Shown: positions 1 through 28,636 of the stretch, in pieces
Layout: each line of letters starts with the position of its first letter
How positions within the stretch are numbered: the stretch's first letter is position 1
Source: Diplonema japonicum
Taxonomy: Eukaryota > Protista > Euglenozoa: Diplonemea
DNA: 64,000 nucleotides
NCBI GenBank assembly: GCA_964019335.1
Contig: OZ025721.1
Location: forward strand, 124,001-188,000
Reading direction: 5' to 3'
Translations under genes and position numbers: made by a program
Notes under the pieces: generated by a model
The model's input: the letters and a program-made list of their open reading frames with translations, nothing else
Told to the model about the DNA's origin: nothing
Database searches by the model: none

Positions 1-3000
1 TCACCCGCGGCCTGAGAAGGATGAAGACGCGCAGCGCGGCCGGGGAAGACGGAATCTTCTCGGAGATGCTCCTACACCTGAACTCGGACTCCCTCGGTGT
101 CCTCCTTCTACTCCTCAATCGCTCCTGGCTGATGGGTGTCGTCCCCGGTGCCTGGAAGAAGGGAGTGATCGTCCCGGTACCGAAACCTGGAAAAGATGCG
201 ACTCTCTTGGCTTCCTACCGGCCGATCTGCCTGACCAGCTGCCTCTGCAAGCTGCTGGAGAGGATGATCGAGGAGAGGCTCACGTTTCTTCTTGACGCGG
301 ACGGGACGGGAGTCGAGGGACTCCACGACAGCCAGGCTGGTTTCAGACGCGGCCGCTCCACGGAGGAGCAGGTGGCAACCCTCACTGAGTGCATGTCGAG
401 GAACAAAGACGATCGACGTCTCTCGGCCGCTCTGCTGTTCGACTTCTCTTCTGCCTTCGACCTGGTGCCCCATGGTGCCCTGCTGGACAAGATGCGAGGG
501 AAGGGTCTCCCCGAACCCTTCGTGGAGTGGACGCGGTCCTTTCTATGCGGCCGTACTGCTGCGGTCACGATTGGACGGTCGAGGGGGTCGACGACGAAGG
601 TGCGACGGGGTGTCCCCCAGGGCTCTGTCTTGGGTCCCATCCTGTACACCATCTACGTCGACGAACTCGCCAGGAGACTGGAGGGACTGGCGGATGTCTC
701 GGTGCTCTACGCCGACGACGTGGCGGTTGTGATCTCCTCTGGACAAGGGGACGTGGCTGGGCTGGAGCGGAAGGCGCAGGCAGTGGTGGATGCGGTTGAG
801 GACTGGTGCAGGGAGCGTGACATGCTGCTGAGCACGTCCAAGACGCAGGCAGTCTGCGTCCCCCCCCAGAAACGTCTCGGGGTCTACTTCACTTCGTCAC
901 GAGTCCCCCTTCAGCCAGGTGCCTTCCAGAACCCACTCTTCGGCCTGGGGGTGAACGCCGATGGCACGATCTCCGGGGACCAGGAGCTGGCGGGCCTTCA
1001 GGTTGTGGAGGCGGGTGGTGTGCGGATCCGCTGCGTGCGGGACATGCATGCAGCCGTGCGACGGCCCGACGTGGATTACGTTGCGGCCCGTCCCCTGCCT
1101 CTATCTGAACACGCGAGGTACCTTGGGGTTACGGTGGACTCTGGGCTCACGTTCGGTGAACACGCACAGGACATCCTACGGCGGGCCAGCAAAAGGCTGA
1201 GGGTGCTGAAGCTCTTGTCCGGCACGTCCTGGGGCAGCAAGAGGGACACTCTGCGGTCTCTCTACGTTACGTACATCCTCCCGCTGCTGCGCTACTGCAT
1301 GGGGGTCTACTACAGCAGGCTCGATGATGTCGGGAGGAAGGACCTGGCTGGGCTTCACCAGGAGGCGGCGGTGCTGATCACGGGCTGCTGGAGTGGCTCC
1401 GGAGGGTACAAGCTCCTAGCTGAGGCAGGACTGCTTCCCCTCGAAAGAATGGCGGAGGGTGCTGCGGCGACGATGACGGCGAAGGCCTTCTGCTGGCAGT
1501 CTTCCCCGGTTCACAGGGAGACGGTCAAGCTGAAGCAGGCGAACAGGCTGGGGTGTGGGTGGCTGCGCTCTGGCTACCAAGCACTGCGTCGATGCGGGTT
1601 GGAACCAAAGGTGCACTTCGAGTACCTGTCGGCTACGCCCCTGGCGGCCCCGTGGCAGACAGGCATGGTCGACTTCAGGACTGACCTCCCCGGCGGGGTC
1701 ACGCGATCGTCGCCAGACGCGGACAGGCGGAAGGCGGCCGAGGCTGCTCTTGCGGCTCTCCCCCCGGGCATCCATGCCTACACGGATGGCTCGGTTGTAC
1801 AGGTCGGACAGAAGGCGAAAGGTGGCTCTGGGGTTTATCTGCAGCTGCCTCCCCCCCTGACCCCTGTGTCTGTGTGCCATGGCGTCAACGACTTCTGTTC
1901 ATCCTTTCGGGCAGAGGGCATGGCTGTGAAAACGGCACTGGATATGGTGGCCACCCTCCGAAAAACACACCCTTCGCTGGCGAAGTCCCCGCTGTCGATC
2001 TGCACCGACTCCCTCTCCCTCGTCGAGCAGCTGCGAGCTGGCCCAACGCGACAGAGGGAGAAGCTCGACCACCAGACGTGGAGCCGGCTGGTGTCCGCGG
2101 CGCGCACGCAGGGGACACCGGTGGTCCTCCAGTTTGTGCCCTCCCACTGTGGGGTGGACGGGAACGAGAAGGCTGACGCTCTGGCCGGGGAGGGAACGAA
2201 GCGGAAGCAGGACAGGCCCTCCCTTGACTACCGATCAGTGAGGGCCCTGGTGCGACGGTGGGTGGTGCGGAGGTCCGCGGAGCTCATAACATCCCTCGCC
2301 CACAACTACGCGGTGGCGACCGAGCTTCGGTCTGCGCACTTCCCCCTTGGCTTCCCCAGACAAGCTGAAACGGTCATCTCGCGGCTGCGGATTGGTCACT
2401 CGGCTCTCTTCTTCGGCTTCCTGCAGACTGCTGGCCCGAACAGGAAGCACAAGGGTGTGCTCCGGTGCCCAGCCTGCCACGCAGCACCGATGTCCAGGGA
2501 GCATGTTGTCGGTGGGTGCCCTGTGATCGGGAGGGGGGCGATCGACACTCCTGCTGGTACTCCCTCCCTAGCGTTCTCCCTGTCGAGACGCGTGACCCAG
2601 ATCTACGACCTCATTGTTGAGTCTGGCCTGCTCGCCTGGTCACGCTCCGGACTGTTCACCTCGCCATCATCCCTGGCGTCTACAGACGTCACTGCACCTT
2701 CAAACGTGCCACCCCCTCCTCCGGTCTCTCTTGACGCCGGTCCCGCGGCCCCCGTGCTGCGCTAAGGGATCGCCCGCGTGTGTGTAAAGTGAAATGTTGT
2801 GTTTTCCACTTTCCTTTCCCTTCCTTTCCCTTCCTTCACCTTCCTCTCACTGTTTCCCATTTCCCCTTTTTTTTTTATTTTCACACTCACCAATGATTCG
2901 CTCAATAGGAGCAATACCTCCCTGGGGGGCTTTCCGCCGGAGGTTCCAGCCAAAGAAGGACATCCAGCTGGAAGGTAGGCCCCCGTTTTTCTCTCACTTG

Positions 3001-3216
3001 ACTGAGGGAATAATGTAATTCAGCCCTCTTCGGCTGTCCCAAAGCAGAGCACGGGTTGGTGGGGGACCAGGGCTCCTCCTGCTTGCAGAAGCCTGGTCCA
3101 TTGCCCTCCCTATTTCCCCATGGTTTCCCTTCACCTTTTTTTCCCCTTTTCTCAGGTGTTGCTCTCCATGGCGGCCCTGCATTGGTATTTTGAAAAAAAA
3201 AAAAAAAAAAAAAAAA
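1..3216 (+). mobile_element. Non-LTR retrotransposon family A, copy 1 (Ingi/I-group-like), 5' part outside window; poly(A) tail ends 7 nt before tRNA-His
   Basis: RT/RNase H ORF, 3' UTR and A-tail 3193-3216; nearly identical to 10578-13785. Confidence 0.95.
21..2765 (+). CDS. Family A ORF2, C-terminal part: reverse transcriptase + RNase H + CCHC knuckle
   Basis: YRPICLTS, QAGFR, GVPQGSVLGP, YADD, YLGV; RNase H YTDGS...AE...TDS...VPSHCGVDGNEKAD; CPAC...H...C. Frame continues upstream of window. Confidence 0.95.
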   Translation: MKTRSAAGEDGIFSEMLLHLNSDSLGVLLLLLNRSWLMGVVPGAWKKGVIVPVPKPGKDATLLASYRPICLTSCLCKLLERMIEERLTFLLDADGTGVEGLHDSQAGFRRGRSTEEQVATLTECMSRNKDDRRLSAALLFDFSSAFDLVPHGALLDKMRGKGLPEPFVEWTRSFLCGRTAAVTIGRSRGSTTKVRRGVPQGSVLGPILYTIYVDELARRLEGLADVSVLYADDVAVVISSGQGDVAGLERKAQAVVDAVEDWCRERDMLLSTSKTQAVCVPPQKRLGVYFTSSRVPLQPGAFQNPLFGLGVNADGTISGDQELAGLQVVEAGGVRIRCVRDMHAAVRRPDVDYVAARPLPLSEHARYLGVTVDSGLTFGEHAQDILRRASKRLRVLKLLSGTSWGSKRDTLRSLYVTYILPLLRYCMGVYYSRLDDVGRKDLAGLHQEAAVLITGCWSGSGGYKLLAEAGLLPLERMAEGAAATMTAKAFCWQSSPVHRETVKLKQANRLGCGWLRSGYQALRRCGLEPKVHFEYLSATPLAAPWQTGMVDFRTDLPGGVTRSSPDADRRKAAEAALAALPPGIHAYTDGSVVQVGQKAKGGSGVYLQLPPPLTPVSVCHGVNDFCSSFRAEGMAVKTALDMVATLRKTHPSLAKSPLSICTDSLSLVEQLRAGPTRQREKLDHQTWSRLVSAARTQGTPVVLQFVPSHCGVDGNEKADALAGEGTKRKQDRPSLDYRSVRALVRRWVVRRSAELITSLAHNYAVATELRSAHFPLGFPRQAETVISRLRIGHSALFFGFLQTAGPNRKHKGVLRCPACHAAPMSREHVVGGCPVIGRGAIDTPAGTPSLAFSLSRRVTQIYDLIVESGLLAWSRSGLFTSPSSLASTDVTAPSNVPPPPPVSLDAGPAAPVLR

Positions 3217-3223
3217 TTCCGAA

Positions 3224-3295
3224 GCGGTTTTCGTATAGTGGTTAGTACACTTCGTTGTGGCCGAAGAAACCCGAGTTCGATTCTCGGAAGCCGCT
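3224..3295 (+). tRNA. tRNA-His (GTG)
   Basis: Acceptor GCGGTTT/AAGCCGC, anticodon arm CTTCG-TTGTGGC-CGAAG, T-loop GTTCGATTC, T-run terminator follows. Confidence 0.93.
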
Positions 3296-3376
3296 TATTT
3301 TTTTTCTTCCAGAGAGATCATGTTAATCGGTAGTGTGAGTGAGTGTGTGAAAGGAAGTTATTCGGCCGCACAAAAT

Positions 3377-3923
3377 CTCGTCCGGCATCATCCGGCGTCT
3401 GGCCTTCTCTTACCAGTATGCCCGTCCCCCCCCCTTTAAACTTTGTGCCCTGACATTGTAGTCAAAAACGGATGGCCCGGCCTACTCTGAAGTTGCCCTG
3501 ATGAGTCCTCTCATCTTCGCACGAACGAGTGTGGTACAGCCATCCCCTCCCCCTGCCAGCCGGAGTGCAGCGGGGAGAGCAAATACTTCCCGTATCATCC
3601 CCATGTGCACACGCACACTCGCTTCCCCTTTTGATTTTGAGAGATTTTACTCTCTCCCTTTCATGTTTCGCTCAATGGAGCAATCGGCTGGTGGGGTGCC
3701 GAGGGACGTTGAAGGTGGGCACAGTTGCGAACGCTGGGAGCCCCCGGGCCTGCCCACCTCCCGCCTCGGTACGTATGGATAGTTGTGGGAGGGTTTTCTT
3801 TAAACTTTTACAAAAAAATTGTCACCCCTCTTGTTCACTTGCAGGGTGCTCTTCAGGCCTCCTGCCCTGTCCCTCCCCCCCAGCCTTTAGCTTTGCACAA
3901 CAGTGGTACATTTATTATTATTA
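3377..3923 (+). mobile_element. 5'-truncated retroposon 3' end with (TTA)n tail
   Basis: 3388-3683 matches the family B 3' UTR (7305-7629) but the distal part differs; ACAAAAT at 3370-3376 and 5679-5685 brackets it together with the nested piggyBac. Confidence 0.7.
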
Positions 3924-3927
3924 TTAA

Positions 3928-5673
3928 CCATTAAAGGACGAAGCGCTAGATATCTAGCGATCAAAAAAATAAAATTTTTGTATAGGCATTTTAAGTACCA
4001 TAGACCCTTACCCTTGCACAGAATGACCTAGTTCCGCGATTTCTTTTCCATCGAAAATCACTTTTGGCCCCTAGATTAACCTCCAAAAACACCCTCGAAA
4101 CCAGTTTTTGGTGGCACGAAAGCTCATATGAGCAGTACTGATTCAGACGAGTTCGGGAGTGCCTAAGGGGACATTCTCACTGACGATGGGACCTGCCAGT
4201 AGTGACGAGAAGAGTGAAAATATGCCCTGTGAGAGCGATATTACGCAGGTTACGCGTAAGAAGTGACAGGGCACAGGGGGGCAGAAATCACCCTTTTCCC
4301 ACATGAGTGCATCAAGGATTTCCAAGCTGTTCATCTCAATGGGTTTGTGAAATCTCTTTGCACCGTTTGCAAGTACCACAACCCCGACTTTGACTTCACT
4401 GTAGACGATATCTATCAGTTTGTGGCCTTGTGGGTGCTCATGGACATCATCCGCAAGGCTGGCATAAAAGATTACTGGCCGACCATTTGTGCCCTCGCCA
4501 CACCTTTTTTTGGCAAGTGTATCGTGATCACTGCAGAAACACCAATGCTTATGATGCCAAAAAAGGACAACATGGCAACCAGAATGTCTCGGCGGCGGAG
4601 CTCTGCTTCGAGCTTCTTGTCCTGCAGCTCGAGCGCGACAATGAAAGCTCTTACAACGTTCTCCCATATCTCCTGCGGTGCCTTCAATGGCGTCTTGCTT
4701 GACATGAAGTGAACGTCGTGCTCAGTCTGAAAGCGCACCCCACGTGACTTGTCGATGCCACTATTCGTGTCCGCCTGGTGGATGGCTCGGCATCGGTAGC
4801 GTTCCCCTTGTACCCCGGCATCGATAACTTCTATACTGGCGTTACCCTTGTACAACAGATGTGGGAATCGGGTTTGTGGTGGAAACAATCCGAGGAAAGT
4901 CCAGTCAATGGTGGTAACAATCCGAAGAAAACCGCCAGAATGTACCTAATCTTGCCCCAGTGAAGAAGCAAGTAGGCCCAGGCAGGCCCAAAAACGGGTT
5001 CGCGATGAGCGACAACAGCTTTTCGACTGTTATGCGCCAGTCCGGAAACAACCGCCCAGCAAGCACCCGTTCTGAAATGGGGACCGAGGGGCCCAGGGAA
5101 GATGCCAGGCGCGACTTCACCAAAGGTCACTGGTCTAAAAAACTGGATGCAGCAAGACAATGCACATACCACATGCGTGTTTTGGGGGTCCGGGTGCAAA
5201 CTATCTTCATCTGCAAGGCTTGTAACGTGCATCTGTGCCCAGCTTGCTTTGCCGACTATCACGAACCAGTGGTTTACCCACCCCAATCTACCCCCTCTGG
5301 AGGTCCGGCCACACCGAAGGAACGCCTAAGGTACCAGCGTCTCCAAACACATACCCTTCTCCCCAGGTCGTCATCTGAGCCAAGTCCCAAAGCAAAACCC
5401 CCCCTAGCACTCCGAGGCCCAAGCGAAAAAAGTAAGGAAGTGTCTAACCTATGGGTGGGTTTTTACAATAAATTTCACTTCAATTCCTTATTCTATTCAC
5501 TTCCCAGGGCCTTTGAGGGGCGTCTGGGGGTGTTTTTTGTCCCTCCTGGGTGATGTATTTTCTTTTACACAAGCGTCGTTCTATGGTTGCATGCTCGAGG
5601 ATGTTTTAATTTTAGAAAATAAAAAAGTCGATGGTGACCTTTTTTTTGCCCAAAAACCCCCATCCTTTAATAG
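3928..5673 (+). mobile_element. Defective piggyBac-like DNA transposon
   Basis: TTAA at 3924-3927 and 5674-5677; imperfect TIR CCATTAAAGGACG/CATCCTTTAATAG; transposase fragments (IYQFVALWVLMDIIRKAGIKDYW..ATPFFGK, DNFYTG, C-terminal CKACNVHLCPACFADYH). Confidence 0.88.
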
Positions 5674-5755
5674 TTAAAACAAAATTGGAGAGATAATAAG
5701 AGCTCAGAAAAGCTCATATGCACAGAGAAGTTTATTGACGGTACGGAATTTCGTC

Positions 5756-7931
5756 GGCGAAGTATCTTGGGGTCACTGTAGACTCTGGGCTCACGTTTGA
5801 CGAGCATGCGGGGGATGTCCTGAAGCGCGCTGACAAGAGGCTGAGGGTTCTAAGGCTCCTGGCTCAGGGACAGCAGGGTGGAGGAGCTTGTTGGGCTCCA
5901 CCAGAGAGCGGCGGTGCTGATCTCGGGTTGTTGGCACGGCTCGGGCACGGCGAAGGTTGTTGCTGAGGCAGGTCTGCTACCCCTCCGACAGATGGCTGAG
6001 GGAGCTGCGGCAGTGTTGACGGCGAAGTCGTTCTGCTGGAGGACCTCCCCGGTTCACCGCGAGGTCCTTGAAGCGGATGACCGGTATGGGCAATGGGTGG
6101 CTGCGTGCGGGAATCCTTGCGCTACGACGCTGCGGACTGCAGGGATGGACGACGCAGGAAGGCTTTAGGAAGTACGACACCTTCGAGCTACTGACTGCCT
6201 CGCCCAAAGTAGCACCGTGGCACGCGATCCTAGTGGAGTTCAGAACTGCCCTTCCCGGCAGGGTTACGCGTTCGTCGCCGGACGTGGATAAGCGGAAGGC
6301 GGCCGTGGAGGCTCTGGCTGCCCTTCCACCGGGTATCCATGCCTATACGGATGGTTCTGTCGTACGGGACCGCCAGAGGTGGAGGGGCGGCGCCGGGGTC
6401 TTCTTGCAGCTCCCCCGCCCCCACGAACCCGTGTCCGAGAGCTTCGGCGTCAGCAATTTCTGCTCTTCCTTTCGGGCGGAGGGTCTGGCTGTCAAGGTGG
6501 CTCTGGACATGGTGGCCGCGCTCCGGAGCGAGCACCCCACGTTGGCAGACAGCCGGCTGTCGATCTGTACCGACTCGCTCTCTCTCCTTGATCAGCTGAG
6601 GGCAGGTCCTTCACGGCAGAGGGAGAGGCTCGACCACGAGACCTGGGAGCTGCTGGTGGCCGCGGCACGTGCGCAAGGTGCACCAGTCATTCTCCAGTTT
6701 GTGCCGTCCCACTGCGGGGTTCCTGGCAACGAGGCGGCAGACAGGCTGGCCGGGGAGGGCACGAAGCGCGAGCTGACTCGCCCCTCTCTCGACTACAGGT
6801 CGGTCAGGGCCCTGGTCCGTCGCCAGATTCAGCAGAGGTCTGCGGTCATTGTCGGGGAGGTGGCCCCGAGGTACGCGAGGGCCACGGGGCTCCGAGCGGC
6901 GTGCTTCCCCCAGTCCCTCCCCAGGCTAGCGGAGACGGTCATCTCGCGGCTGAGGGTAGGGCACTCCGCTCTCTTCTTCGGCTTCCTGCAGGCGGCTGGA
7001 CCGAACAGGAAGAAGGCTGAGCTCAGCTGTCCAGCGTGTGGAGCACAGATGTCCAGGGAGCACGTTGTTGGGGGGTGCGCTGTGGTTGGACGGGGTTCGC
7101 TCGACGCTCCCCCGCAGGTACCGCTGCCCCTTCGCTCATCCCGCCCCCGCCGGCTGTCTCCCTTGACGCCGGCCCTGCGGCCCCCGTGTTGCGCTGAAGT
7201 GAGTAGGGTGAGATCAACTTTTCAATACTTTTAGTGTTTACGTTCCCTTCCCTTCTCTTCCACTTCCTCTCATCCTTTTCTTACCTTACTTACGTTATCA
7301 TCATCATCCGGCGTCTGGCCTTCTCTTACCAGTATGCCCGTCCCCCTTTAAACTTTAAAAATTTAAAATTAACATCCTCTTGTTGTCGTGTGTTTTGACA
7401 TTGTAGTCAAAAACGGATGGCCCGGCCTACTCTGAAGTTGCCCTGATGAGTCCTCTCATCTTCGCACGAACGAGTGTGGTACGGCCATCCCCTCCCCCCG
7501 CCAGCCGGAGTGCAGCGGGGAGAGCAAATGCTTCCCCTATCATCCCCATGCGCACACGCACACTCGCTTCCCCTTTTGATTTTGAGAGATTTTACTCTCA
7601 CCCTTTCATGTTTCGCTCAATGGAGCAATTCCTCTCGAGGGGGCGACCGGGGCCAGTTCCGGTCACCAGAGGTCCCAGTTGAGAAAAACTACGAACTGGA
7701 GTCAAGGTCCCCGTCCGAGTCACGTAGGTCTACGCGGCTTGGAATTGAAGTAATTCAGCCCTCTTCGGCTGTTCCAAACGGTGCACGGGTTGGCGGAGTC
7801 CACAGCTCCATCTGATTGCAGAAGAACTGGTCTTCGCCCTCCCTGTAATATTTCCATGCTTCCCTTCACCTTTCCCCTTCCCAGGTGTTGCTCCCCCATG
7901 GTGGCACCTATTGGTATTTTGAAAAAAAAAA
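5756..7931 (+). pseudogene. 5'-truncated, internally deleted copy of retrotransposon family B
   Basis: Near-identical to reverse complement of 20759-23149 with deletions near 5861, 6071 and 7114; A-tail 7922-7931; preceded by GGAATTTCGTC 5745-5755. Confidence 0.92.
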
Positions 7932-7937
7932 GGAATT

Positions 7938-7955
7938 ATTATTATTATTATTATT
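7938..7955 (+). mobile_element. Tail-only (ATT)6 insertion, probably abortive family C event
   Basis: Flanked by direct repeat AAAAGGAATT (7928-7937, 7956-7965); same tail type and target as family C. Confidence 0.65.
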
Positions 7956-7976
7956 AAAAGGAATTTCGTCTCCATC

Positions 7977-9053
7977 GTGGCGGAAGGGAGGGCGGATGCC
8001 TTTCGGATTGCGGGGACGCTGGGTGGGTTGTCTCTCGGGGTGGCGCACCGTAAGGGATGGACTGTGCGGTGCCTACCGGAGACGGAACAGCGGCTCCGGG
8101 AAACCCTCGCAAAACTGCGTACGAAGCGCAAGTTTTTGCTCACCGGGGCCCCGCCGTCCATCACCAGGGCGGCCTTCGACGAAGTGATGGACCACATCGG
8201 TTGGAAACCATCCTCCGTCCTGCGACGCACGCAGACGATGTTCCAGGGCACGAGGCAACTCGTGTTCTTCATCGTCGTCGACAGCCCGCCCCCGAAGTCC
8301 AGGACGTGGCTCCTTGGGGGGCGCCTTGTCTGTCTCCGTGATGCGGACGACCACCCGACCGTCAAGCCGCCCCCTCTCATCAACAGGACGACACCTGCAT
8401 CTGCACCTGCGCTTGCAACGTCCTCGACCCCGGCACCCACATCTTCTCATGTACCTGCACCTGCGCCTACTACACCTGTACCTGACCCGGCACCTGTATC
8501 GGCGTCGACACCCTCGGAGACTGGCCCTGCGGTGAAAGCAACTGGGCTTCCTCCCACCAGCCCGTGGGCGTCCATACCGAGCTCGGTGGCTCCCCCCCAG
8601 CTCGACACTGTGACGTCCCCTACACCGCCCCGCAACGTGTCTGCGGGAAACAAGGAGGGAGTCCCTTCCGGGTCGCCTGAGGTCGCCGCTCTCACTGAGC
8701 TCGTCGCCACGCTGAAGGAGTCGATCGTCGGGCTGCAGAGGACGATCGACTCTCAGCAGGAGATGATCTCCGATCTGCGGACGACGCTCCGCCTCCTCCT
8801 GCCGCAGGCGGCCACGCTGACGACGGGAACGGCAGTGCCGCGGGACCCTACACCGGGGGCGACGACGACACACGACAGTGTCTGGAAAGGGAAGGGGAAG
8901 GGGAAGAAGGGGGCTCCTCCTCTCGCTACGACCTCTGAGGCTGCGGTGACGAACCTGGGTACGAGGGGGCGGGCCAGGTCGTTCGCGGAGACCAAAGATC
9001 TCTTCACCAATGGGGTCAAGGGGCGCTCTGCCTCCATGGGTCCATCCAATTGA
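7977..9053 (+). CDS. Family A ORF1 (gag-like), N-terminally truncated
   Basis: Homologous to C-terminal half of 25793-27943; Pro/Thr-rich linker, coiled coil, KGKGK basic patch. Confidence 0.8.
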   Translation: MAEGRADAFRIAGTLGGLSLGVAHRKGWTVRCLPETEQRLRETLAKLRTKRKFLLTGAPPSITRAAFDEVMDHIGWKPSSVLRRTQTMFQGTRQLVFFIVVDSPPPKSRTWLLGGRLVCLRDADDHPTVKPPPLINRTTPASAPALATSSTPAPTSSHVPAPAPTTPVPDPAPVSASTPSETGPAVKATGLPPTSPWASIPSSVAPPQLDTVTSPTPPRNVSAGNKEGVPSGSPEVAALTELVATLKESIVGLQRTIDSQQEMISDLRTTLRLLLPQAATLTTGTAVPRDPTPGATTTHDSVWKGKGKGKKGAPPLATTSEAAVTNLGTRGRARSFAETKDLFTNGVKGRSASMGPSN

Positions 9054-9194
9054 AGGGGCCCCGCAGAACAGGGGGAGCAGCAGATCTACGACCATGCTCC
9101 CTCTCCTAGTCTCCCTCGCATCCTCCCCAGGAGACTCCTACCTCTCTGTTTCTTCACCGACTTTTCTGCACTGATCCCCACCCTACTCGGGAGG

Positions 9195-13342: not shown

Positions 13343-13854
13343 GGGATCGCCCGCGTGTGTGTAAAGTGAAATGTTGTGTTTTCCACTTTCCTTTCCCTTC
13401 CTTTCCCTTCCTTCACCTTCCTCTCACTGTTTCCCATTTCCCCTTTTTTTTATTTTCACACTCACCAATGATTCGCTCAATAGGAGCAATACCTCCCTGG
13501 GGGGCTTTCCGCCGGAGGTTCCAGCCAAAGAAGGACATCCAGCTGGAAGGTAGGCCCCCGTTTTTCTCTCACTTGACTGAGGGAATAAGGTAATTCAGCC
13601 CTCTTCGGCTGTCCCAAAGCAGAGCACGGGTTGGTGGGGGACCAGGGCTCCTCCTGCTTGCAGAAGCCTGGTCCATTGCCCTCCCTATTTCCCCATGGTT
13701 TCCCTTCACCTTTTTTTTCCCTTTTCTCAGGTGTTGCTCTCCATGGCGGCCCTGCATTGGTATTTTGAAAAAAAAAAAAAAAAAAGGAATTTAAAAAAAA
13801 GGTGGGGGGTCTGATACACTATCACATAATAAATTTTAATAAAAATTTATAAAA

Positions 13855-15237: not shown

Positions 15238-15740
15238 AAAAGGTGATAAGTTTTTTCCATTTTACCATAATAGATAAGAAAGAAAAAAAAAAGAAAAAAG
15301 AAAGTGTTTCCCTATTAAGCCCCCAACCCCCCAATTCGTCTACAAAAAAAAAAATAATAAAAAAAAAAAAAAAAAAAAAAAACCATAAAAAAAAAAACAA
15401 AAACAAAAAAAAAAACATAAAGAAAATAAAAGAACAAGAGAAAAAAAAAAAAACAACAAAAAAAAAATATAAAAATAAAAAAAAAATAATACACGACGAC
15501 GACGACGACGACGACAACGGGTCACAGCAATGTCATCTCTCTGCGCGAAGGAAGCTCGTACGACTTGGCTACAACTCGCGGCTAAATCCTGGCCGGCCCC
15601 GCACGTATAGGGGTGTCCAAACGGGACAAGGCGTTAGTGGTGGCGACGTAAGGTCTGTTAGGGCCGGCCCCCCCCAAGTCGTACAACCCTATCTTCGAAG
15701 ACCTGAAGGTAGGGGTGACCACAAAGGCAGAGTGACATAC

Positions 15741-19724: not shown

Positions 19725-20048
19725 AAAAACTTATAAATTATAATATGTTATACTCTCCAAACATTGAGGTCTGAAGTTGTTAAACGACTTCAGACAGCAA
19801 TTGTTTCTAACTCAATCTCTCGACTCTGGCTTCACTCCTATCCTTTCTTTTCACCTCCCTCCCCAGTGTCTTCCCTTATTTTCCATTACCAGGCCCCTGT
19901 CCCCCGCCCCCAGTGTTATTCAAATTTTTCACTCACCTTTCATATAGAAAGAAAAAAGAAAAAAAAAAAAAGAAAAAAAAGAAGGACAGATGATTCAAGC
20001 TTCGGTGTACACAATCGAGCTTGATTTGAATTCCTTTATTTTGAGAAA

Positions 20049-20109
<61 letters not shown>

Positions 20110-20560
20110 GAAGAACGAAACTTAATTGAATTGAATTTATTGGCTCCCGAAAGCCCAACAAGTCCAGCAGACGGTGGAGTTTCACAGTCAGCTGGTTAAT
20201 TTTTCACAATTGAAACTCCTCCAAAGTTCTTAAAATCTGGGAGGTCGTCTCTTGTTACTAGAGGCGGCTAATGCCTCGAGACCCAGGTGCTGCCTGGTGG
20301 GTGGGATCGGTTTTATTTTATTATGAAAAGAGCGTGGTGAGGGGGTCCAAGTAATTTACAACAGGGAGCAGCGGACCAGGACCCCTCGACCAATGGCTCA
20401 GTAACAGAGACTGCTTTTCACGAATCACTTTCAAACACCTCTCTTGGTTTGAAGTGATGTCCCTTTCCCTTTCCCTTGAATGGTTTTCTCTACTCCCCTT
20501 CGATCCTCCCGCCTGGTAGTGGAATATTTATTATTTATTATTATTAAAAGGAATTTCGTC

Positions 20561-20632
20561 TCCTCGGTAGTATAGAGGTCAGTATATCCGCCTGTCACGC
20601 GGATGACCCGGGTTCAATTCCCGGCCGGGGAA
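20561..20632 (+). tRNA. tRNA-Asp (GTC)
   Basis: TCCTCGG/CCGGGGA acceptor, TCCGC-CTGTCAC-GCGGA anticodon arm, GGTTCAATTCC, T5 terminator. Confidence 0.95.
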
Positions 20633-20675
20633 TTTTTGCTTCTTCATTGGTAGTGGGCACACAATGTGTGAAAAA

Positions 20676-20747
20676 TTCCCCGGCCGGGAATTGAACCCGG
20701 GTCATCCGCGTGACGGGCGGATATACTGACCTCTATACTACCGAGGA
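20676..20747 (-). tRNA. tRNA-Asp (GTC), convergent copy with U33C change
   Basis: Reverse complement of 20561-20632 except anticodon loop CCGTCAC. Confidence 0.9.
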
Positions 20748-21484
20748 GACGAAATTCCTTTTTTTTTTTTTTTCAAAATACCAATAGGTGCCACCATGGG
20801 GGAGCAACACCTGGGAAGGGGAAAGGTGAAGGGAAGCATGGAAATATTACAGGGAGGGCGAAGACCAGTTCTTCTGCAATCAGATGGAGCTGTGGACTCC
20901 GCCAACCCGTGCACCTGTTTGGAACAGCCGAAGAGGGCTGAATTACTTTAATTCCAAGCCGCGTAGACCTACGTGACTCGGACGGGGACCTTGACCCCAG
21001 TTCGTCGTTTTTCTCGACTGGGACCTCTGGTGACCGGAACTGGCCCCGGTCGCCCCCTCGAGAGGGATTTGCTCCATTGAGCGAAACATGAAAGGGTGAG
21101 AGTAAAATCTCTCAAAATCAAAAGGGGAAGCGAGTGTGCGTGTGCGCATGGGGATGATAGGGGAAGCATTTGCTCTCCCCGCTGCACTCCGGCTGGCGGG
21201 GGGAGGGGATGGCCGTACCACACTCGTTCGTGCGAAGATGAGAGGACTCATCTGGGCAACTTCAGAGTAGGCCGAGCCATCCGTTTTTGACTACAATGTC
21301 AGGGCACACGATAACAAGAGGATGTTAATTTTAAAAATTTAAAGTTTAAAGGGGGACGGGCATACTGGTAAGAGAAAGGCCAGACGCCGGATGATGATAA
21401 AGAAAAGGATGAGAGGGAGTGGAAGAGAGGGGAAGGGAACGTAAGCACTAAAAGAATTGAAATGTTGATCTCACCCTACTCACT

Positions 21485-24400
21485 TCAGCGCAACACGGGG
21501 GCCGCAGGGCCGGCGTCAAGGGAGACAGCCGGCGGGATGAACGAAGGGGCAGCGGTACCTGCCGTTGCCGCAGACGGCGACGTGAAGACCCCGGATCTGG
21601 CCCAGTCAAGCAAGCCAGAGTCGGCGATGAGGGTGAATACCTGCGTCACGCGTTTTGACAGGCACTCCACCAGCGAGGGGCGTCCATTGGGAGCGTCGAG
21701 CGAACCCCGTCCAACCACAGCGCACCCCCCAACAACGTGCTCCCTGGACATCCGAGCTCCACACGCTGGACAGCTGAGCTCAGCCTTCTTCCTGTTCGGT
21801 CCAGCCGCCTGCAGGAAGCCGAAGAAGAGAGCGGAGTGCCCTACCCTCAGCCGCGAGATGACCGTCTCCGCTAGCCTGGGGAGGGACTGGGGGAAGCACG
21901 CCGCTCGGAGCCCCGTGGCCCTCGCGTACCTCGGGGCCACCTCCCCGACAATGACCGCAGACCTCTGCTGAATCTGGCGACGGACCAGGGCCCTGACCGA
22001 CCTGTAGTCGAGAGAGGGGCGAGTCAGCTCGCGCTTCGTGCCCTCCCCGGCCAGCCTGTCTGCCGCCTCGTTGCCAGGAACCCCGCAGTGGGACGGCACA
22101 AACTGGAGAATGACTGGTGCACCTTGTGCACGTGCCGCGGCCACCAGCAGTTCCCAGGTCTCGTGGTCGAGCCTCTCCCTCTGCCGCGAAGGACCTGCCC
22201 TCAGCTGATCAAGGAGAGAGAGCGAGTCGGTACAGATCGACAGCCGGCTGTCTGCCAACGTGGGGTGCTCGCTCCGGAGCGCGGCCACCATGTCCAGAGC
22301 CACCTTGACAGCCAGACCCTCCGCCCGAAAGGAAGAGCAGAAATTGCTGACGCCGAAGCTCTCGGACACGGGTTCGTGGGGGCGGGGGAGCTGCAAGTAG
22401 ACCCCGGCGCCGCCCCTCCACCTCTGGCGGTCCCGTACGACAGAACCATCCGTATAGGCATGGATACCCGGTGGAAGGGCAGCCAGAGCCTCCACGGCCG
22501 CCTTCCGCTTATCCACGTCCGGCGACGAACGCGTGACCCTGCCGGGAAGGGCAGTTCTGAACTCCACCAGGAACGCGTGCCACGGTGCTACTTTGGGCGA
22601 GGCAGTCAGTAGCTCGAAGGTGTCGTACTTCCTGAAGCCTTCCTGCGTCGTCCACCCCTGCAGTCCGCAGCGTCGTAGCGCAAGGATACCCGCACGCAGC
22701 CACCCATTGCCCATACCGGTCATCCGCTTCTGCTCAAGGACCTCGCGGTGAACCGGGGAGGTCCTCCAGCAGAACGACTTCGCCGTCAACACTGCCGCAG
22801 CTCCCTCAGCCATCTGTCGGAGGGGTAGCAGACCTGCCTCAGCAACAACCTTCGCCGTGCCCGAGCCGTGCCAACAACCCGAGATCAGCACCGCCGCTCT
22901 CTGGTGGAGCCCAACAAGCTCCTCCACCCTGCTGTCCCTGAGCCTGGCAAAGTAAACACCCATGCAGTACCGGAGTAGCGGGAGAACGTACGTGAGGTAC
23001 AGTGAACGGAGCGTGGCCTTCTTGCACCCCCAGGTCGTGCCCGACAGGAGCCTTAGAACCCTCAGCCTCTTGTCAGCGCGCCTCAGGACATCCCCCGCAT
23101 GCTCGTCAAACGTGAGCCCAGAGTCTACAGTGACCCCAAGATACTTCGCCGACCCACACAGAGGCAAGGGGCGAGCCGCCATGTAACCAATGTCGGACCT
23201 CCGGATGGCGGCGGGAATGTCGAAGGACCGTTTGCCACCCGCCTCCACGACCCGAAAGCCAGACAGCTCACGGACGCCAGACAAGGTCCCACAGACCCCA
23301 ACCCCAAGATTAAGGACAGGGTCCTGGAAGGCCCCCGGGCAAAGCGGGACACGCGACGAAGAGAAGTAGACATTAAGCCGCTTCTGATAGGGAACGCACA
23401 CTGCCTGCGACTTGCTGGAGCTCAGCAGCATGCCCCGTCTCCCACACCAGCCCTCAACCGCGTCCATCACAGCCTGGGCCCCTCGCTCAAGACCAGCCAG
23501 GTCGCCCTGCCCGGCTGAGACCACCACCGCAACATCGTCGGCATAAAGAACCGACAGGTCCGCCATCCCAACCAGCAACCTGGCTAGCTCGTCGACGTAG
23601 ATGGTGTAAAGGACGGGTCCCAGCACAGACCCTTGGGGCACCCCTCTCCTCACCTTCGTCGTCGACCCTCGCGAACGACCCACCGTGACCGCCGCCGTAC
23701 GACCGCAGAGGAAGGAGCGCGTCCATTCGACGAAGGGCTCAGGGATCCCCTTCCTCCGCATCATGCCCAGGAGAGCTTCGTGCTGAACCAGGTCAAACGC
23801 AGATGAGAAGTCAAACAGCAGGGCAGCCGACAGACGACGACTGTCTTTGTTCCTCGACAGACACCCGGTCAGGGACGCCACCTGCTCCTCCGTGGAGCGG
23901 CCCCTCCTGAAGCCAGCCTGGCTATCGTGGAGACCCTCAACGCCCGACGCGCTAGAGTCTAGGAGAAAGGTAAGCCTCTCCTCTATCATCCTCTCAAGCA
24001 GCTTACAAAGACAGCTAGTGAGACATATGGGACGGTACGATGCAAGCAACGTGGCGTCCTTCCCTGCCTTCGCCACTGGAACAATCACCCCCTTCTTCCA
24101 GGCACCCGGCACGATCCCCGCCTGCCATGAGCGATTGAGGAGCAGAAGTAGAACCCCGAGCGAGGGTTGGTCGAGGTGGAGAAGCATCTCCGCGAAGATG
24201 CCATCATCACCCGCTGCACTGCGTGTCTTCATCCTTCCCAGACCGCGGGTGAGATCATACACCGTAAAGGCGTGGCACCCAAGCACGTTCGTCGAAGGAG
24301 CTACGTCCACCGCGTCCCCATCACCACCCTGGCCGTAGAGCTTGCCGAAGTGAGCCCCCAGGCGGTCGGCTTTCGCCTTGTCCGTCACGAACCTCCCCTC

Positions 24401-25651
24401 GAGAATGGGAAGGTGCGGTCTGCGGTGTCTGCCGTCCAGCTTCTTCACCGCCCTAAACGCAGACCCGAGGTCCTTGCTCCGACTGAGGTCAGCCGCCATC
24501 TCACCCCAGGCCGCGCGCTTCGACTCGGTCATGAGTTGGTTTACCTCCTTGACCTTCGCCTTGTAGACCGCCGCCACGCTGTCGTCCTCAGTCTCAGCCG
24601 ACTTGAGGAAGCGATCCCGCAGGGCGTTCCGTTCTTCGAAGGCGTCTTCGAGTTCGGCCGTCCACCAGGGGGTCGGGCCTCGTCGCACTCCGCAAAGCGG
24701 AATGTGGTCGTCAGCTGCATGCAGAAGAGCCTCTGTAACCTCTTTCGTGAAGGAGTCAATGTGGGCCTTCGTGTCGATCTTGGTCAGAAGGGCAGCGGCG
24801 GCCGCGGTGAAGTCGTCCCACCTGGCCTTTTTGAAGTTCCAGGTAGGGCAGGGTCGCTCCGAGCAGTAGGCGTCCTCAAGCGGCAGGCGGAAGGAAACCG
24901 GGCTGTGATCAGAGCCCCACGTCCCCAACGTCCTCGGCTCCAGTTCCGCACAACGTCCCACCACCAGGTCCAGAACGCGTGGCGGTGAGTCCCGCGTCGG
25001 CTCGTCACGGTTGTTGTAGACGGTGTAGCCGTGGGTGTCAAGCCAGTCCCTGACCACGTTCCCCCTTTCGTTGGGCGTTGTCACCTTGGCATCCCAAGAG
25101 CTGTGGTGTGCGTTGAAGTCGCCAGCAACGATCGTGTTCTTCCCCACAGGTAGGCTGCCCGGCCGTAGGTACTCGGGGTCCCTTGTTCCTCTGCTTATAC
25201 TCACAGGCGTGAGGTACACGTTGGAGAGGGTGACCGGGACGCGCTTCACACAGGAGATCCTCACGTCTAATCGCTCAGTGACACTGTCACCTTCAGGGAG
25301 TACGAAAGGAGCTTCCTCCGAGGCAAGGCAGTCACGGACATACGTGATGACACCACCGCCTCTCGTCGCAGAGCCGTCCGTCACCGGTGTTGTGCGGTCC
25401 CTCCTGTAGGACGTGTATCCAGGCAGGTATGGTGTCTCATGCCCCTCCCTAAGGTGTGTCTCCTGGATCATAATGATATCCAGCGTCAGTAGGACAGCGT
25501 GGTAGGACACGGTTGACCACTTGGCGGCAAGACCGTTGCAGTTCCAGGACAGGACCCTGAGTCCCTTCGGCTTCGGGGGTGGGAGCTTCTTAGGTGGACC
25601 GGGGTTCGTCTCAACCAGCCCAAGCAGCCCCAGCAGGTCCCTGGCCGACAT
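21485..25651 (-). CDS. Family B ORF2: 2A-like peptide, APE, RT, RNase H, CCHC
   Basis: Uninterrupted ORF with LVETNPGP, SWNCNG, GDFNAHH, YADD, YTDGS; paralogous to family A ORF2. Confidence 0.95.
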   Translation of the reverse strand: MSARDLLGLLGLVETNPGPPKKLPPPKPKGLRVLSWNCNGLAAKWSTVSYHAVLLTLDIIMIQETHLREGHETPYLPGYTSYRRDRTTPVTDGSATRGGGVITYVRDCLASEEAPFVLPEGDSVTERLDVRISCVKRVPVTLSNVYLTPVSISRGTRDPEYLRPGSLPVGKNTIVAGDFNAHHSSWDAKVTTPNERGNVVRDWLDTHGYTVYNNRDEPTRDSPPRVLDLVVGRCAELEPRTLGTWGSDHSPVSFRLPLEDAYCSERPCPTWNFKKARWDDFTAAAAALLTKIDTKAHIDSFTKEVTEALLHAADDHIPLCGVRRGPTPWWTAELEDAFEERNALRDRFLKSAETEDDSVAAVYKAKVKEVNQLMTESKRAAWGEMAADLSRSKDLGSAFRAVKKLDGRHRRPHLPILEGRFVTDKAKADRLGAHFGKLYGQGGDGDAVDVAPSTNVLGCHAFTVYDLTRGLGRMKTRSAAGDDGIFAEMLLHLDQPSLGVLLLLLNRSWQAGIVPGAWKKGVIVPVAKAGKDATLLASYRPICLTSCLCKLLERMIEERLTFLLDSSASGVEGLHDSQAGFRRGRSTEEQVASLTGCLSRNKDSRRLSAALLFDFSSAFDLVQHEALLGMMRRKGIPEPFVEWTRSFLCGRTAAVTVGRSRGSTTKVRRGVPQGSVLGPVLYTIYVDELARLLVGMADLSVLYADDVAVVVSAGQGDLAGLERGAQAVMDAVEGWCGRRGMLLSSSKSQAVCVPYQKRLNVYFSSSRVPLCPGAFQDPVLNLGVGVCGTLSGVRELSGFRVVEAGGKRSFDIPAAIRRSDIGYMAARPLPLCGSAKYLGVTVDSGLTFDEHAGDVLRRADKRLRVLRLLSGTTWGCKKATLRSLYLTYVLPLLRYCMGVYFARLRDSRVEELVGLHQRAAVLISGCWHGSGTAKVVAEAGLLPLRQMAEGAAAVLTAKSFCWRTSPVHREVLEQKRMTGMGNGWLRAGILALRRCGLQGWTTQEGFRKYDTFELLTASPKVAPWHAFLVEFRTALPGRVTRSSPDVDKRKAAVEALAALPPGIHAYTDGSVVRDRQRWRGGAGVYLQLPRPHEPVSESFGVSNFCSSFRAEGLAVKVALDMVAALRSEHPTLADSRLSICTDSLSLLDQLRAGPSRQRERLDHETWELLVAAARAQGAPVILQFVPSHCGVPGNEAADRLAGEGTKRELTRPSLDYRSVRALVRRQIQQRSAVIVGEVAPRYARATGLRAACFPQSLPRLAETVISRLRVGHSALFFGFLQAAGPNRKKAELSCPACGARMSREHVVGGCAVVGRGSLDAPNGRPSLVECLSKRVTQVFTLIADSGLLDWARSGVFTSPSAATAGTAAPSFIPPAVSLDAGPAAPVLR

Positions 25652-25792
25652 CCGTTCAAGTAAGGAAGGGATCAAGGAAGGGAGGACGTCGTACAAGTGA
25701 TGTGGAAGGTGTCTCCTCGGCTGTATGCGCGGGAGACCAGGAGAGGGGGCGTGGTCGTCGATCTGACGCCCCCCCTGCTCAGCGGGACCCCT

Positions 25793-27943
25793 TCAATTGG
25801 CAGGGGCGGGGGCCGGGCCCACAGAGGCTGCCCGTCCACGGCCGGCCCCGTTGGGGGAAGCAGAGTCGCCAGCCAGCGACTGGGCGCGTCCCCTTCCGCC
25901 CCCTTGCTCCGTCGATGTCGGGTAGGGGCCTGGCGTGCTTACGCCCTGCGCCTGGTGCCCCTTCGTCCCTGCCTTGGACCCAGCCTTGCCGCCCTTGCCC
26001 TTCCCAGCCACTGCCGTCCGCCCAGCTCCGTCTGCAGATGACGCCGGCGCGCCAAGTGACGCTGCCATCTTCTCCTGGAGGTCGCGGACCGTCGCCTGCA
26101 GACCGTCGATGGTCGCCTGCATCGACTGGATCAGCGCGAGGAGCGCCGGGACCTCAGGTTCCGGTGCGGGATTCTTCTTCTGGGAGTCACGGGGAGGTGT
26201 CGTGGTCGGGGAAGCCGCAGAGGAGACCGGAGTCACAGTGCCAAGTGGCGGAGGGGCAACCGAGCTCGGTGGAGATGACCACGGATTGGTGCTCGGCAGC
26301 CCTGCGGACTGCACCGTGGGGCCAGGGGCCGGCGTCGGCGTCTGGGCCGTGGTTGCCGCAACCGGCGTCCGAGCCGCGGGTGGAGCCTTCTTGTTGGTGC
26401 GGGGCGGGAGCGTGACGCTCGGGTGGTCCTCCGCGTCGTGCAGTCGAACGAGACGGGAGCCGAAGAGCCATGTCCTGGCCTTGGGGGGCGGGGCGTCGGC
26501 GACGATGAAGAACACGAGTTGCCTCGTGCCCTGGAACGACGTGTCAGAGCGTCGGATGATGGACGACGGCTTCCAACCGATGTGGTCCATCATCCCGTCG
26601 AAGGCTGCCCTGGTAACAGACAGCGGGGCTCCGGTGAGCAGGTACCGTCGCTTTGTCCTCTGCTTGGCGAGGGCCTCCCTCAGACGCTGCTCCGTCTCCG
26701 GCAGGCACCTCACGGTCCAACCCTTGCGATGGGCCACCCCCAGGGACAACCCGCCCAGTGCCTTCGCCAGCTGGAAGGCCTCCGCCCTCCCCTCCGCTAC
26801 GATGGGCACGTAGGTGTACCCCCCGCGCCGCTCGGTCGTCCTGACCATGCAGCCGTCGCCCGAGGCCCGGAGTACCGCATGGACGGATGCCGCTGGGAGC
26901 CGCAGGCCCACCTCGTGGCTCCAGTGACGCGCCCGCGGCTCGTTCCCGTCGATCTTCTTCGGGCGGAAGATCGCCTGCTCCTCCACCGCCACGCCCTGGG
27001 TCGCGACGAGGTCCCGAACCCTGGCCTTCGCCGCGTTCACGCTGTCAGCTTTCACGCTGACGTACACTACCTCAGAGCCGCCGTCAAAAGAAGCGAGTGG
27101 GGTGTAGGAGGGGGGGTTCGACCCGACCGAGAAGGTGTGCACGGCCTTGTGCACGGCACGCTGGCCGGCGAGTACGATGACGGTGCATGGGGTGGTCGAA
27201 CCGGCAACCTCCGTCAAGAGGACGAAGGTCAGGGAGGCCGTGGGCCTCGCAGTGCGAATCGCGTCCACCTGCTGGAGGTCGTCGAGAGCGACGACGGCGC
27301 GGGGCACCTCCTCAGGGGGAGCAGTGTTGGTGTAGATGGGGGCGTCCCACGTGTCGGGGACCAGATCCCAGCGAGGCTCAGGGGCCGGTGCGGGAGCGGG
27401 GGCCGTGTTCTTCTCGTCGGTGTCAGAGTCCGACATGGGGAGGGCGGTGTCGCAGGCAGCGGCAGTAAGGACGGCAGTAGACCACACGGCAGCAGTAGGG
27501 GCTGGAGCCGGAGGAGGAGCAGTGGTGTCAGCAGTAGAGGCTGGAGCAGGCGCAGGAGCAGTGGTGTCGGCAGCAGCAGTCCTCATCCTCGCCCTCCTGA
27601 CCTCTGGCGTGTCGACCGTGAACGAGGTGACAACGCCCGGCGACTCGCTAATTAGGACGACAGAGTCGTCGGAGCCCGAAGCAGCGGCGGCGGCGGCGGC
27701 GGTGGCAGCGTCAGCAGCTGCTGCCTTCTGTCTGGCCCTTCTGGCCGCCTTCTTCCCTTGCCCGGGGGAGGGTGTCACCACCGGCGTGACCCCCTCTGCG
27801 CGCTTCCTCTCCACCTCCTCGCGCGTGCGCTTCGCCCTGGCGGCGGCGTTGTCCTTTACCCGCTCCCCGCGGGCTTTCTCCAGGATTTCCTCAGTCCTGG
27901 ACTTGTGGTGCGGGGGCCTCTTCTTCTTGCTGGAGGTCGGCAT
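25793..27943 (-). CDS. Family B ORF1 (gag-like)
   Basis: ATG at 27943 (MPTSSKKKR) inside the TSD; basic N-terminus, Ala/Pro linkers, C-terminal coiled coil. Confidence 0.85.
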   Translation of the reverse strand: MPTSSKKKRPPHHKSRTEEILEKARGERVKDNAAARAKRTREEVERKRAEGVTPVVTPSPGQGKKAARRARQKAAAADAATAAAAAAASGSDDSVVLISESPGVVTSFTVDTPEVRRARMRTAAADTTAPAPAPASTADTTAPPPAPAPTAAVWSTAVLTAAACDTALPMSDSDTDEKNTAPAPAPAPEPRWDLVPDTWDAPIYTNTAPPEEVPRAVVALDDLQQVDAIRTARPTASLTFVLLTEVAGSTTPCTVIVLAGQRAVHKAVHTFSVGSNPPSYTPLASFDGGSEVVYVSVKADSVNAAKARVRDLVATQGVAVEEQAIFRPKKIDGNEPRARHWSHEVGLRLPAASVHAVLRASGDGCMVRTTERRGGYTYVPIVAEGRAEAFQLAKALGGLSLGVAHRKGWTVRCLPETEQRLREALAKQRTKRRYLLTGAPLSVTRAAFDGMMDHIGWKPSSIIRRSDTSFQGTRQLVFFIVADAPPPKARTWLFGSRLVRLHDAEDHPSVTLPPRTNKKAPPAARTPVAATTAQTPTPAPGPTVQSAGLPSTNPWSSPPSSVAPPPLGTVTPVSSAASPTTTPPRDSQKKNPAPEPEVPALLALIQSMQATIDGLQATVRDLQEKMAASLGAPASSADGAGRTAVAGKGKGGKAGSKAGTKGHQAQGVSTPGPYPTSTEQGGGRGRAQSLAGDSASPNGAGRGRAASVGPAPAPAN

Positions 27944-28047
27944 GTTTCTTTTCTTTTCTTTTCTTTCCTTGACGAAATTCCGTACCGTCAATAAACTTCT
28001 CTGTGCATATGAGCTTTTCTGAGCTCTTATTATCTCTCCAATTTTGT

Positions 28048-28532
28048 TTGTTTGTTTCAGTTTTATTTTTTGTTTACGAAAAATAAAAACTCAACAAAGG
28101 CCTCCCCTCTAGGGAGGAATAGCAACAGAAAAGACCTGGCAGCAGAACAGGAGACATTGGGTGAGGTTTTTTGGGGGGGAATGACTCTACTCTACTCATT
28201 TAAGTTGCCCATTTCGAGGGCCCCGGTCGTCGACGTCGTCGTCAAGCAACCAGCGCGATGGAGCGGCAGGGCCAACTCGTGAGAGGAAGGAAGGGGTTGG
28301 GAGAGGGATAGTTGAAGTAGAGGGCCGGTCGGGACCCGGATCAGCACGAACGCCCCCCCGGCTCCGCTCCACTCGAGAGATGCCTTCGCTCAGAACGAGT
28401 CCTTCTTTGGCTGGAACCTCCGGCGGAAAGCCCCCCAGGGAGGTATTGCTCCTATTGAGCGAATCATTGGTGAGTGTGAAAAAGGGGAAATGGAAAACAG
28501 TGAGAGGAAGAGGGGAAGGAAGGGAAAGGGAG
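28048..28532 (-). mobile_element. 5'-truncated retroposon 3' end
   Basis: 28402-28531 matches family A 3' UTR (about 2811-2960), distal part differs; flanked by ATTTTGT (28041-28047, 28533-28539). Confidence 0.72.
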
Positions 28533-28636
28533 ATTTTGTGCGGTCGAATAACTTTTATGCGTGTGAGAATGCCATAAGTCTGACATTTTAATGTTTATAT
28601 TCATACCGGCACCGATGGCTTCTTACAAATACTGTG

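Follow-up and report, generated by a model that had tools for sequence, protein, structure and literature searches.

Introduction

Position-specific targeting of tRNA genes by retrotransposons without long terminal repeats (LTRs), the non-LTR elements, has been documented so far only in dictyostelid amoebae (review PMC5911963). Spaller et al. (2016, PMC5006619) described NLTR-A of Dictyostelium purpureum, an element with APE endonuclease, reverse transcriptase (RT) and RNase H domains, at 2-6 bp upstream of tRNA genes, while NLTR-B of Polysphondylium pallidum lies about 50 bp upstream and TRE3 downstream of its targets (PMC5006619, PMC5911963). TRE5-A is inserted about 48 bp upstream in the orientation opposite to the tRNA gene, forms clusters at tRNA genes and also targets 5S genes; its targeting depends on TFIIIC and TFIIIB, and its ORF1 protein (ORF, open reading frame) binds TFIIIB (PMC5911963).

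Here we describe three non-LTR families, designated A, B and C, of the diplonemid Diplonema japonicum, which occupy the first 28.5 kb of a 64,000-nucleotide stretch (positions 124001-188000 of contig OZ025721.1, hereafter the window) within a 62.5-Mb, 132-contig assembly. All three carry APE, RT and RNase H domains and are inserted tail-first upstream of tRNA-His and of a convergent pair of tRNA-Asp genes. An earlier note on this DNA had regarded such tRNA-targeted APE-RT-RNase H elements as not described before, a claim that was too strong in view of NLTR-A and NLTR-B (PMC5006619, PMC5911963).

Results

Junctions between the elements and tRNA genes

Four tRNA genes were identified in the window by ARAGORN, tRNA-His (3223-3296, plus strand), two tRNA-Asp (20561-20632, plus strand, and 20676-20747, minus strand) and tRNA-Asn (53953-54025, plus strand), and Rfam concurs on tRNA-His (span 3224-3295) and both tRNA-Asp genes. 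The first 28.5 kb, with a G+C content of 52-67% versus about 45% in the remaining window, are made up of repeats as judged by self-comparison. The full-length B element on the minus strand (20759-27970) is bounded by GGAATTTCGTC on both sides (20748-20758 and 27971-27981), and the same sequence stands at the left of the truncated B element (5745-5755) and, at 7960-7970, at the left of the A element 7971-13785, which is followed by GGAATTT (13786-13792). The C element is located between aaaaGGAATTT (13782-13792) and AAAAGGAATTT (20546-20556), the latter being followed by CGTC and the plus-strand tRNA-Asp.

The A and B duplications reach exactly to position -1 wherever both junctions are readable: GGAATTTCGTC twice in the window, GCAGGTCAGCT (L195), TCGTAAG (L191), TCCGTA (L008/L039) and GAAAACAA (L038/L015). 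The stagger is 11 nt in three of these six duplications, 6-8 nt in the other three, and again 11 nt in one clean C case. The C duplication in the window spans -15 to -5, placing the C register about 4 nt further upstream than that of A and B; L187 is compatible with this register, with GTAG not duplicated and the left copy merging with an A poly(A). Because the duplications run to -1, the second cut of A and B is assigned to -1/+1 and the first mostly to -12/-11, and as the tail, whether poly(A) or (TTA)n, points towards the tRNA gene, the first nick of target-primed reverse transcription (TPRT) is assigned to the strand templating the tRNA. Two insertions have longer duplications that extend into the tRNA gene, by 15 nt in tRNA-Lys (L009/L040) and by 46 nt in tRNA-Arg (L022/L023), each with a partial tRNA copy upstream and the intact gene downstream.

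Direct reading of the junctions thus bore out the tRNA gene positions and the A/B (-11 to -1) and C (-15 to -5) duplications given in the earlier note, as well as the ending of A before tRNA-His with a differing 7-nt spacer, TTCCGAA. The insert-free locus reconstructed here likewise agrees with the one it had proposed, i.e., tRNA-His, a short gap (about 160 bp as measured) and the two tRNA-Asp genes facing each other.

Genome-wide distribution of the element ends

The 3' ends of A, B and C were sampled by best similarity, regardless of location, and their downstream flanks were read. The A/B tail motif is present 153 times in the genome against none for the reversed control, and about 45% of the A/B ends were inspected. 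Direct adjacency to a co-oriented tRNA gene was detected for 36 of the 89 sampled ends: 20 of 39 for A (19 measurable, 1-13 nt after the poly(A), median 7, with clusters near 5 and 12), 9 of 30 for B (5-13 nt, mode 12) and 7 of 20 for C (13-15 nt, tRNA-SeC included). For A and B together, 14 of the 28 adjacent copies have 12-13 nt between the poly(A) and tRNA +1 and the remaining ones 1-11 nt, the modal spacer being 12 nt, and the other (TTA)n-tailed types end 14-19 nt from the tRNA. The chance of finding a co-oriented tRNA start within 17 nt of a 3' end is about 2e-4 per copy, assuming 1,600 tRNA genes, a rough first-look candidate count taken as generous. The targeted tRNAs belong to more than 30 anticodon families and the spacers are all different, indicating targeting by position and not by sequence.

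The copies that do not adjoin a tRNA gene run, after a few nucleotides, into the 5' end of a further element, which may be full-length or truncated. These short linkers often match the spacer at a tRNA gene a few kb downstream, as observed for TCCGTA (L008/L039, tRNA-Asp), TCTTGCAG (L028/L035, tRNA-Cys) and GAAAACAA (L038/L015, tRNA-Arg). Since the duplication regenerates the insertion site, stacks build up. Tracing was limited to the nine A copies that could be followed for at least 10 kb, and all nine reach a co-oriented tRNA gene through co-oriented elements, one stack, at tRNA-Ala on C15, comprising at least eight elements over about 24 kb.

Two further observations were made on the stacks. 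Some flanks are exact duplicates of each other (L012/L013, L030/L031, L045/L046 and L051/L052). A 217-nt A fragment in front of tRNA-Asp (L181:7630-7900, C51) is preceded by TACACGAAACGT, the spacer found before tRNA-Met in L025 (C36), a hint that stacks may exchange sequence by recombination or template switching.

Occupancy of tRNA genes and other Pol III genes

The same relationship was examined from the side of the target, using 40 tRNA genes picked by covariance-model score alone, blind to repeats. An element tail was found 1-19 nt upstream of 14 of them, co-oriented in every case and of seven tail types in all: A at five genes, B at one and (TTA)n types at eight (C, C-like, F, G and one more). 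The F-type tail ends 14-15 nt upstream of tRNA-Thr and tRNA-Ile (L130, L140). No tail was detected 20-80 nt upstream or in antisense orientation at any of the 40 genes. Taken together, insertion is almost only 1-19 nt upstream of tRNA genes and always co-oriented. The earlier proposal of tRNA-targeted, tail-to-gene insertion with family-specific registers is therefore supported by the 36 adjacent ends and the 14 occupied genes alike, and the genome-wide check of 3' ends that it had called for, made on the sample, anchored every traced A stack at a co-oriented tRNA gene.

The 26 empty tRNA genes (L120-L158) are 74% A+T at positions -25 to -21 and 34-38% A+T at -20 to -11, a pattern resembling a TATA-like box with a GC-rich block downstream of it. 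Insertion swaps these -25 to -11 blocks for an A-rich or TTA-rich tail. As to other genes that RNA polymerase III (Pol III) transcribes, one of the 14 dispersed 5S rRNA genes is preceded by 365 nt of an A element, with the poly(A) stopping 8 nt upstream of the gene, and elements were found at none of six U6 and none of six 7SL genes. All six 7SL genes (L280-L285) share about 100 nt of conserved upstream sequence starting with a tRNA-like B box, GGCTCGAATCC; no full tRNA was called upstream of them by ARAGORN.

Coding capacity and activity of the three families

The long ORFs of A, B and C encode APE, RT and RNase H domains (Pfam) and a C-terminal CxxC-x7/8-H-x4-C (CCHC) motif. A and B, both with poly(A) tails, are about 75% identical at the DNA level, and C carries a (TTA)n tail. 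ORF1 of B (725 aa) is followed by one in-frame UGA (25795-25793), about 62 residues, a 2A-like GLVETNPGP (NPGP 25606-25595) and the APE-RT-RNase H part, ORF1 and ORF2 sharing one frame across the single UGA; the A counterpart of this region is at 9051-9251. ORF1 of C (464 aa, coiled-coil-like) overlaps a long frame holding the canonical 2A sequence DVEQNPGP (NPGP 15834-15845). This arrangement suggests readthrough or frameshift, with 2A release of the enzyme part, in B and C. The ORF1 proteins of B and C showed no similarity in protein comparison, and no Pfam domain was found in the ORF1 proteins. The A-rich 62-nt run at 20046-20107 is internal to C, as 30 of 30 sampled C copies run through it into the same 440-nt 3' untranslated region (UTR). 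A short motif, (A/G)TGG(T/A)A..ATTT, precedes the tail in A/B (13755-13767), C (20515-20545) and F (3900-3928) and could be the site recognised by the RT.

The copies are 97-100% identical and therefore young, the ORFs of B and C are uninterrupted, and the elements are apparently active. The D. japonicum EukProt transcriptome contains a complete ORF with 99% identity to ORF2 of C, indicating that C is transcribed. Beyond this match, the nearest named relatives come from Diplonema ambulator (transcripts, 37-44%) and from arthropods (elements, about 30%); no named Ingi, I, R1 or NLTR reference was among the matches from word-indexed homology search, exhaustive HMMER, cluster look-ups and ESM Atlas. 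A metagenome scan gave distant long interspersed elements (LINEs) only, on short contigs and with 22-31% identity over most matches, none of them with a tRNA downstream. In Logan contigs from other runs, the element ends recur, and a C/tRNA-Ser junction is identical in at least one case. For a kinesin of the host, the best matches were to diplonemid sequences.

Organization of the locus

The features of the locus are listed in Table 1. The 79 nt upstream of the two tRNA-Asp genes are identical, indicating that the tRNA-Asp locus is an inverted duplicate, and each arm has gathered its own stack. Convergent tail-to-tail tRNA pairs, 35-50 nt apart, are common (window 20561-20747; L184, L104, L191, L195, L001, L035, L117 and L118), and several are inverted duplicates (Asp/Asp, Ala/Ala and Ser/Ser), each gene with its own outward-growing stack. 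The piggyBac-like remnant occupies a TTAA supplied by the (TTA)n retroposon tail, and its ORF 4960-5553 gave a weak zf-Tnp_2 match.

Table 1. Features in the first 28.5 kb of the window (positions are those of the window)
Feature	Position	Strand	Basis
Family A, 3' part, cut by window start; poly(A) 3193-3216	1-3216	+	99.6% identical to 10578-13785; ORF 21-2765 continues A ORF2
7-nt spacer TTCCGAA, then tRNA-His(GTG)	3217-3296	+	ARAGORN, Rfam, junction read
Composite insert: B-like 3' UTR fragment 3386-3684, then F-type retroposon end, (TTA)n tail 3914-3928	3381-3928	+	self-BLAST
piggyBac-like DNA transposon remnant inside the (TTA)n tail, outside the guild of tRNA-targeted elements	3925-5676		TTAA at each end; inverted termini CCATTAAAGGA / TCCTTTAATAG
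Original flank upstream of tRNA-Asp(+), with GGAATTTCGTC at its end, 5745-5755 (left duplication of truncated B)	5677-5755	+	100% identical to 27971-28049
Family B, 5'-truncated; poly(A) 7922-7931	5756-7931	+	95-99% identical to minus-strand 20764-23153; RNase H domain
GGAATT + (ATT)6 + AAAA + GGAATTTCGTC: tail-only (TTA)n insertion, then regenerated target	7932-7970	+	sequence read
Family A, 5'-truncated, 5.8 kb: C-terminal part of ORF1, 2A-like GLVETNPGP (NPGP 9240-9251), ORF2 (APE-RT-RNase H) as far as 13342 and poly(A) at 13768-13785	7971-13785	+	
GGAATTT; with the preceding A's, left copy of the C duplication AAAAGGAATTT	13786-13792	+	junction read
Full-length family C, with ORF1 at 13855-15237, an ORF2 frame open as far as 19724, the A-rich tract 20046-20107 and the (TTA)n end at 20545	13793-20545	+	
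AAAAGGAATTTCGTC (-15 to -1), then tRNA-Asp(GTC)	20546-20632	+	ARAGORN, Rfam, junction read
tRNA-Asp(GTC) with -11 to -1 GGAATTTCGTC (20748-20758), right duplication of full-length B	20676-20758	-	ARAGORN, junction read
Full-length family B, 7.2 kb, with a (GAAAA)n leader at the 5' end; ORF1 27970-25796; ORF2 APE-RT-RNase H-CCHC to 21485; poly(A) 20774-20759	20759-27970	-	
Left B duplication GGAATTTCGTC (27981-27971) and original upstream flank of tRNA-Asp(-)	27971-28049	-	identical to 5677-5755
Insert at the mirror -77 point, including a 130-nt A-like 3' UTR piece 28399-28529	28050-28539	-	self-BLAST, junction read

Discussion

Mode of integration

We put at roughly three in four the probability that families A, B and C, along with four or more additional tail types, are non-LTR retrotransposons integrating through TPRT at one position before tRNA genes, and in at least one case before a 5S gene, probably via the Pol III initiation complex. 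The element ribonucleoprotein would be brought to a Pol III-transcribed gene, probably by contact with TFIIIB, TFIIIC or the Pol III initiation complex and not by DNA sequence, and the APE endonuclease would nick the tRNA-templating strand at a set distance upstream of +1, the poly(A) or (UUA)n tail then being reverse-transcribed from this nick. The second strand would usually be cut at -1/+1 (A and B) or -5/-4 (C), and occasionally inside the tRNA gene. The resulting duplication would restore the tRNA-adjacent sequence, the gene would survive and the site would be regenerated, giving head-to-tail stacks that reach about 24 kb. That the Pol III initiation complex recruits the elements is plausible from the position, the orientation, the 5S insertion and the precedent of every studied system (PMC5911963), and we infer both the host factor that is read and the element protein that reads it.

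Several points weigh against this mode of integration. The first-nick position of A is scattered over 1-13 nt and is not fixed, and to place the nick at the start site is to make an assumption on the Pol III start in D. japonicum. A shared ORF1-TFIIIB contact, as in TRE5-A, is not evident because the ORF1 proteins of B and C are unrelated. The positional rule is broken about 77 nt upstream of both tRNA-Asp genes, where the inserts (3381-5676 and 28050-28539) are fragments with tails not adjoining any tRNA; no tRNA was detectable in the 68-nt spacer 5677-5744 between the -77 insert and the -11 site, and the -77 point may mark either another landing site or a Pol III element not recognised as such. 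Finally, Pol III genes other than tRNA genes are hardly used, as seen from the U6, 7SL and 5S counts.

Because of this scarcity, an element protein might instead read the DNA of the tRNA gene directly (its 5' part, A box or acceptor region), or a DNA structure, and measure upstream without Pol III factors. The second-strand cut of A and B at -1/+1 for any isotype suggests measuring from the 5' end of the gene, and the U6 and 7SL genes without elements are as expected from such a mode. However, the 5S rRNA gene with its A insertion has no A box at that distance, the targets extend over more than 30 anticodon families, tRNA-SeC included, and Pol III factors are used by every experimentally studied tRNA-targeting retroelement (PMC5911963), so that we consider direct reading unlikely, at perhaps one chance in six.

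Survival of randomly integrated copies only beside tRNA genes, as harmless sites, deserves attention in a gene-dense genome with long one-strand gene runs, in which selection against genic insertions is expected, but selection cannot yield a 1-19-nt window, strict co-orientation and family registers among young copies of 97-100% identity, making this explanation highly improbable. Least credible is the view that the tRNA belongs to the mobile unit (by 3' transduction or as a tRNA-like tail) or that modules of element plus tRNA were segmentally duplicated, for even though some flanks are exact duplicates and the tRNA-Asp locus is itself an inverted duplication, one element tail adjoins more than 30 different tRNAs with differing spacers, the target-site duplications flank the element and leave the tRNA out, and unoccupied copies of the same tRNA genes exist in the genome. 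The tRNA as an element part, passive accumulation and assembly artefact were all rejected on the basis of the diverse targets and the clean duplications.

Returning to Pol III-directed TPRT, we tentatively propose, at slightly less than even odds, that Pol III-directed retrotransposition arose in diplonemids separately from the amoebozoan and yeast systems. Several LINE lineages, with ORF1 proteins unrelated to one another and tails of two chemistries, would then use a common landing pad, each reading the initiation complex in its own register, at -12 for A/B and near -15 for C. ORF2 may hold the determinant, and the AT-rich tails would stand in for the natural AT-rich box near -25, leaving occupied tRNA genes to run on upstream sequence supplied by the element. 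The independent origin put forward in the earlier note holds relative to the TRE elements, these being L1-like and without RNase H, and is a hypothesis relative to NLTR-A and NLTR-B.

Significance

With the present elements, Discoba, a eukaryotic supergroup different from that of the dictyostelids, has a case that is clear, of high copy number and apparently active. Several families sharing one niche in different registers represent a natural comparative system for the protein part that would read the Pol III complex and for the placement of the nick. Among diplonemids, Paradiplonema papillatum can be transformed (PMC12621601, citing Faktorova et al. 2020). The islands of transposable elements in the D. 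japonicum genome are explained as seeded by tRNA genes, which bears on how LINEs are tolerated in a gene-dense genome with long co-directional gene runs. For the annotation of diplonemid genomes, the targeting provides a rule by which element ends and tRNA genes can be located.

Comparison with known systems

Among euglenozoan elements, ingi and L1Tc share with A, B and C the kind of host, the APE-RT-RNase H order and, for L1Tc, a 2A sequence ahead of the endonuclease. They differ in not being tRNA-targeted, and ORF1 is a separate unit in the A/B/C guild. The C-terminus of L1Tc and ingi carries C2H2 zinc fingers, and the 2A peptide is not exclusive to the Ingi clade. A, B and C have the APE-RT-RNase H order with an upstream 2A, and carry the CCHC motif in place of the C2H2 finger. 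At the 5' end, ingi and L1Tc carry the Pr77 sequence with a hepatitis delta virus (HDV)-like ribozyme (PMC3185411, PMC4035085), and no HDV-like ribozyme was found in 1-30000 of the window by an Rfam E-value scan, by which a divergent ribozyme could be missed. The missing ribozyme and the CCHC motif speak mildly against, and the 2A sequence mildly for, strict membership in the Ingi clade, to which the earlier note had likened the elements.

The LTR retrotransposons yeast Ty3 and Dictyostelium DGLT-A use the same zone upstream of the tRNA gene and leave the gene intact, but they do so with an integrase and not by TPRT. TRE5-A resembles A, B and C as a non-LTR element with position-specific insertion upstream of tRNA genes, 5S insertion and clusters. 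It belongs, however, to an L1-like clade without RNase H, whereas A, B and C have RNase H and lie co-oriented 1-19 nt upstream, and the unrelated ORF1 proteins of B and C stand in contrast to the ORF1-TFIIIB contact of TRE5-A. A, B and C thus fall outside the TRE family proper, which is marked by the lack of RNase H and by opposite orientation at about 48 bp.

The closest system is NLTR-A, compared here by description: it is likewise a non-LTR element with APE, RT and RNase H, alike in architecture and position. It differs in its amoebozoan host and as a single family for which no guild or large stacks have been reported, while A, B and C show modal spacers of 12 and 14-15 nt and, in some families, (TTA)n tails. 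With APE and RT, a simple-repeat tail, variable 5' truncation, target-site duplications and copies placed next to, or in stacks ending at, co-oriented tRNA genes of many isotypes, A, B and C fall within the class of tRNA-targeted non-LTR elements. No report of such elements in diplonemids or other euglenozoans was found in the literature, including the Diplonema papillatum genome paper (PMC10161547) and a diplonemid draft-genome paper (PMC12621601). Thus, tRNA-targeted LINEs are already known as a kind, and they are new for Euglenozoa.

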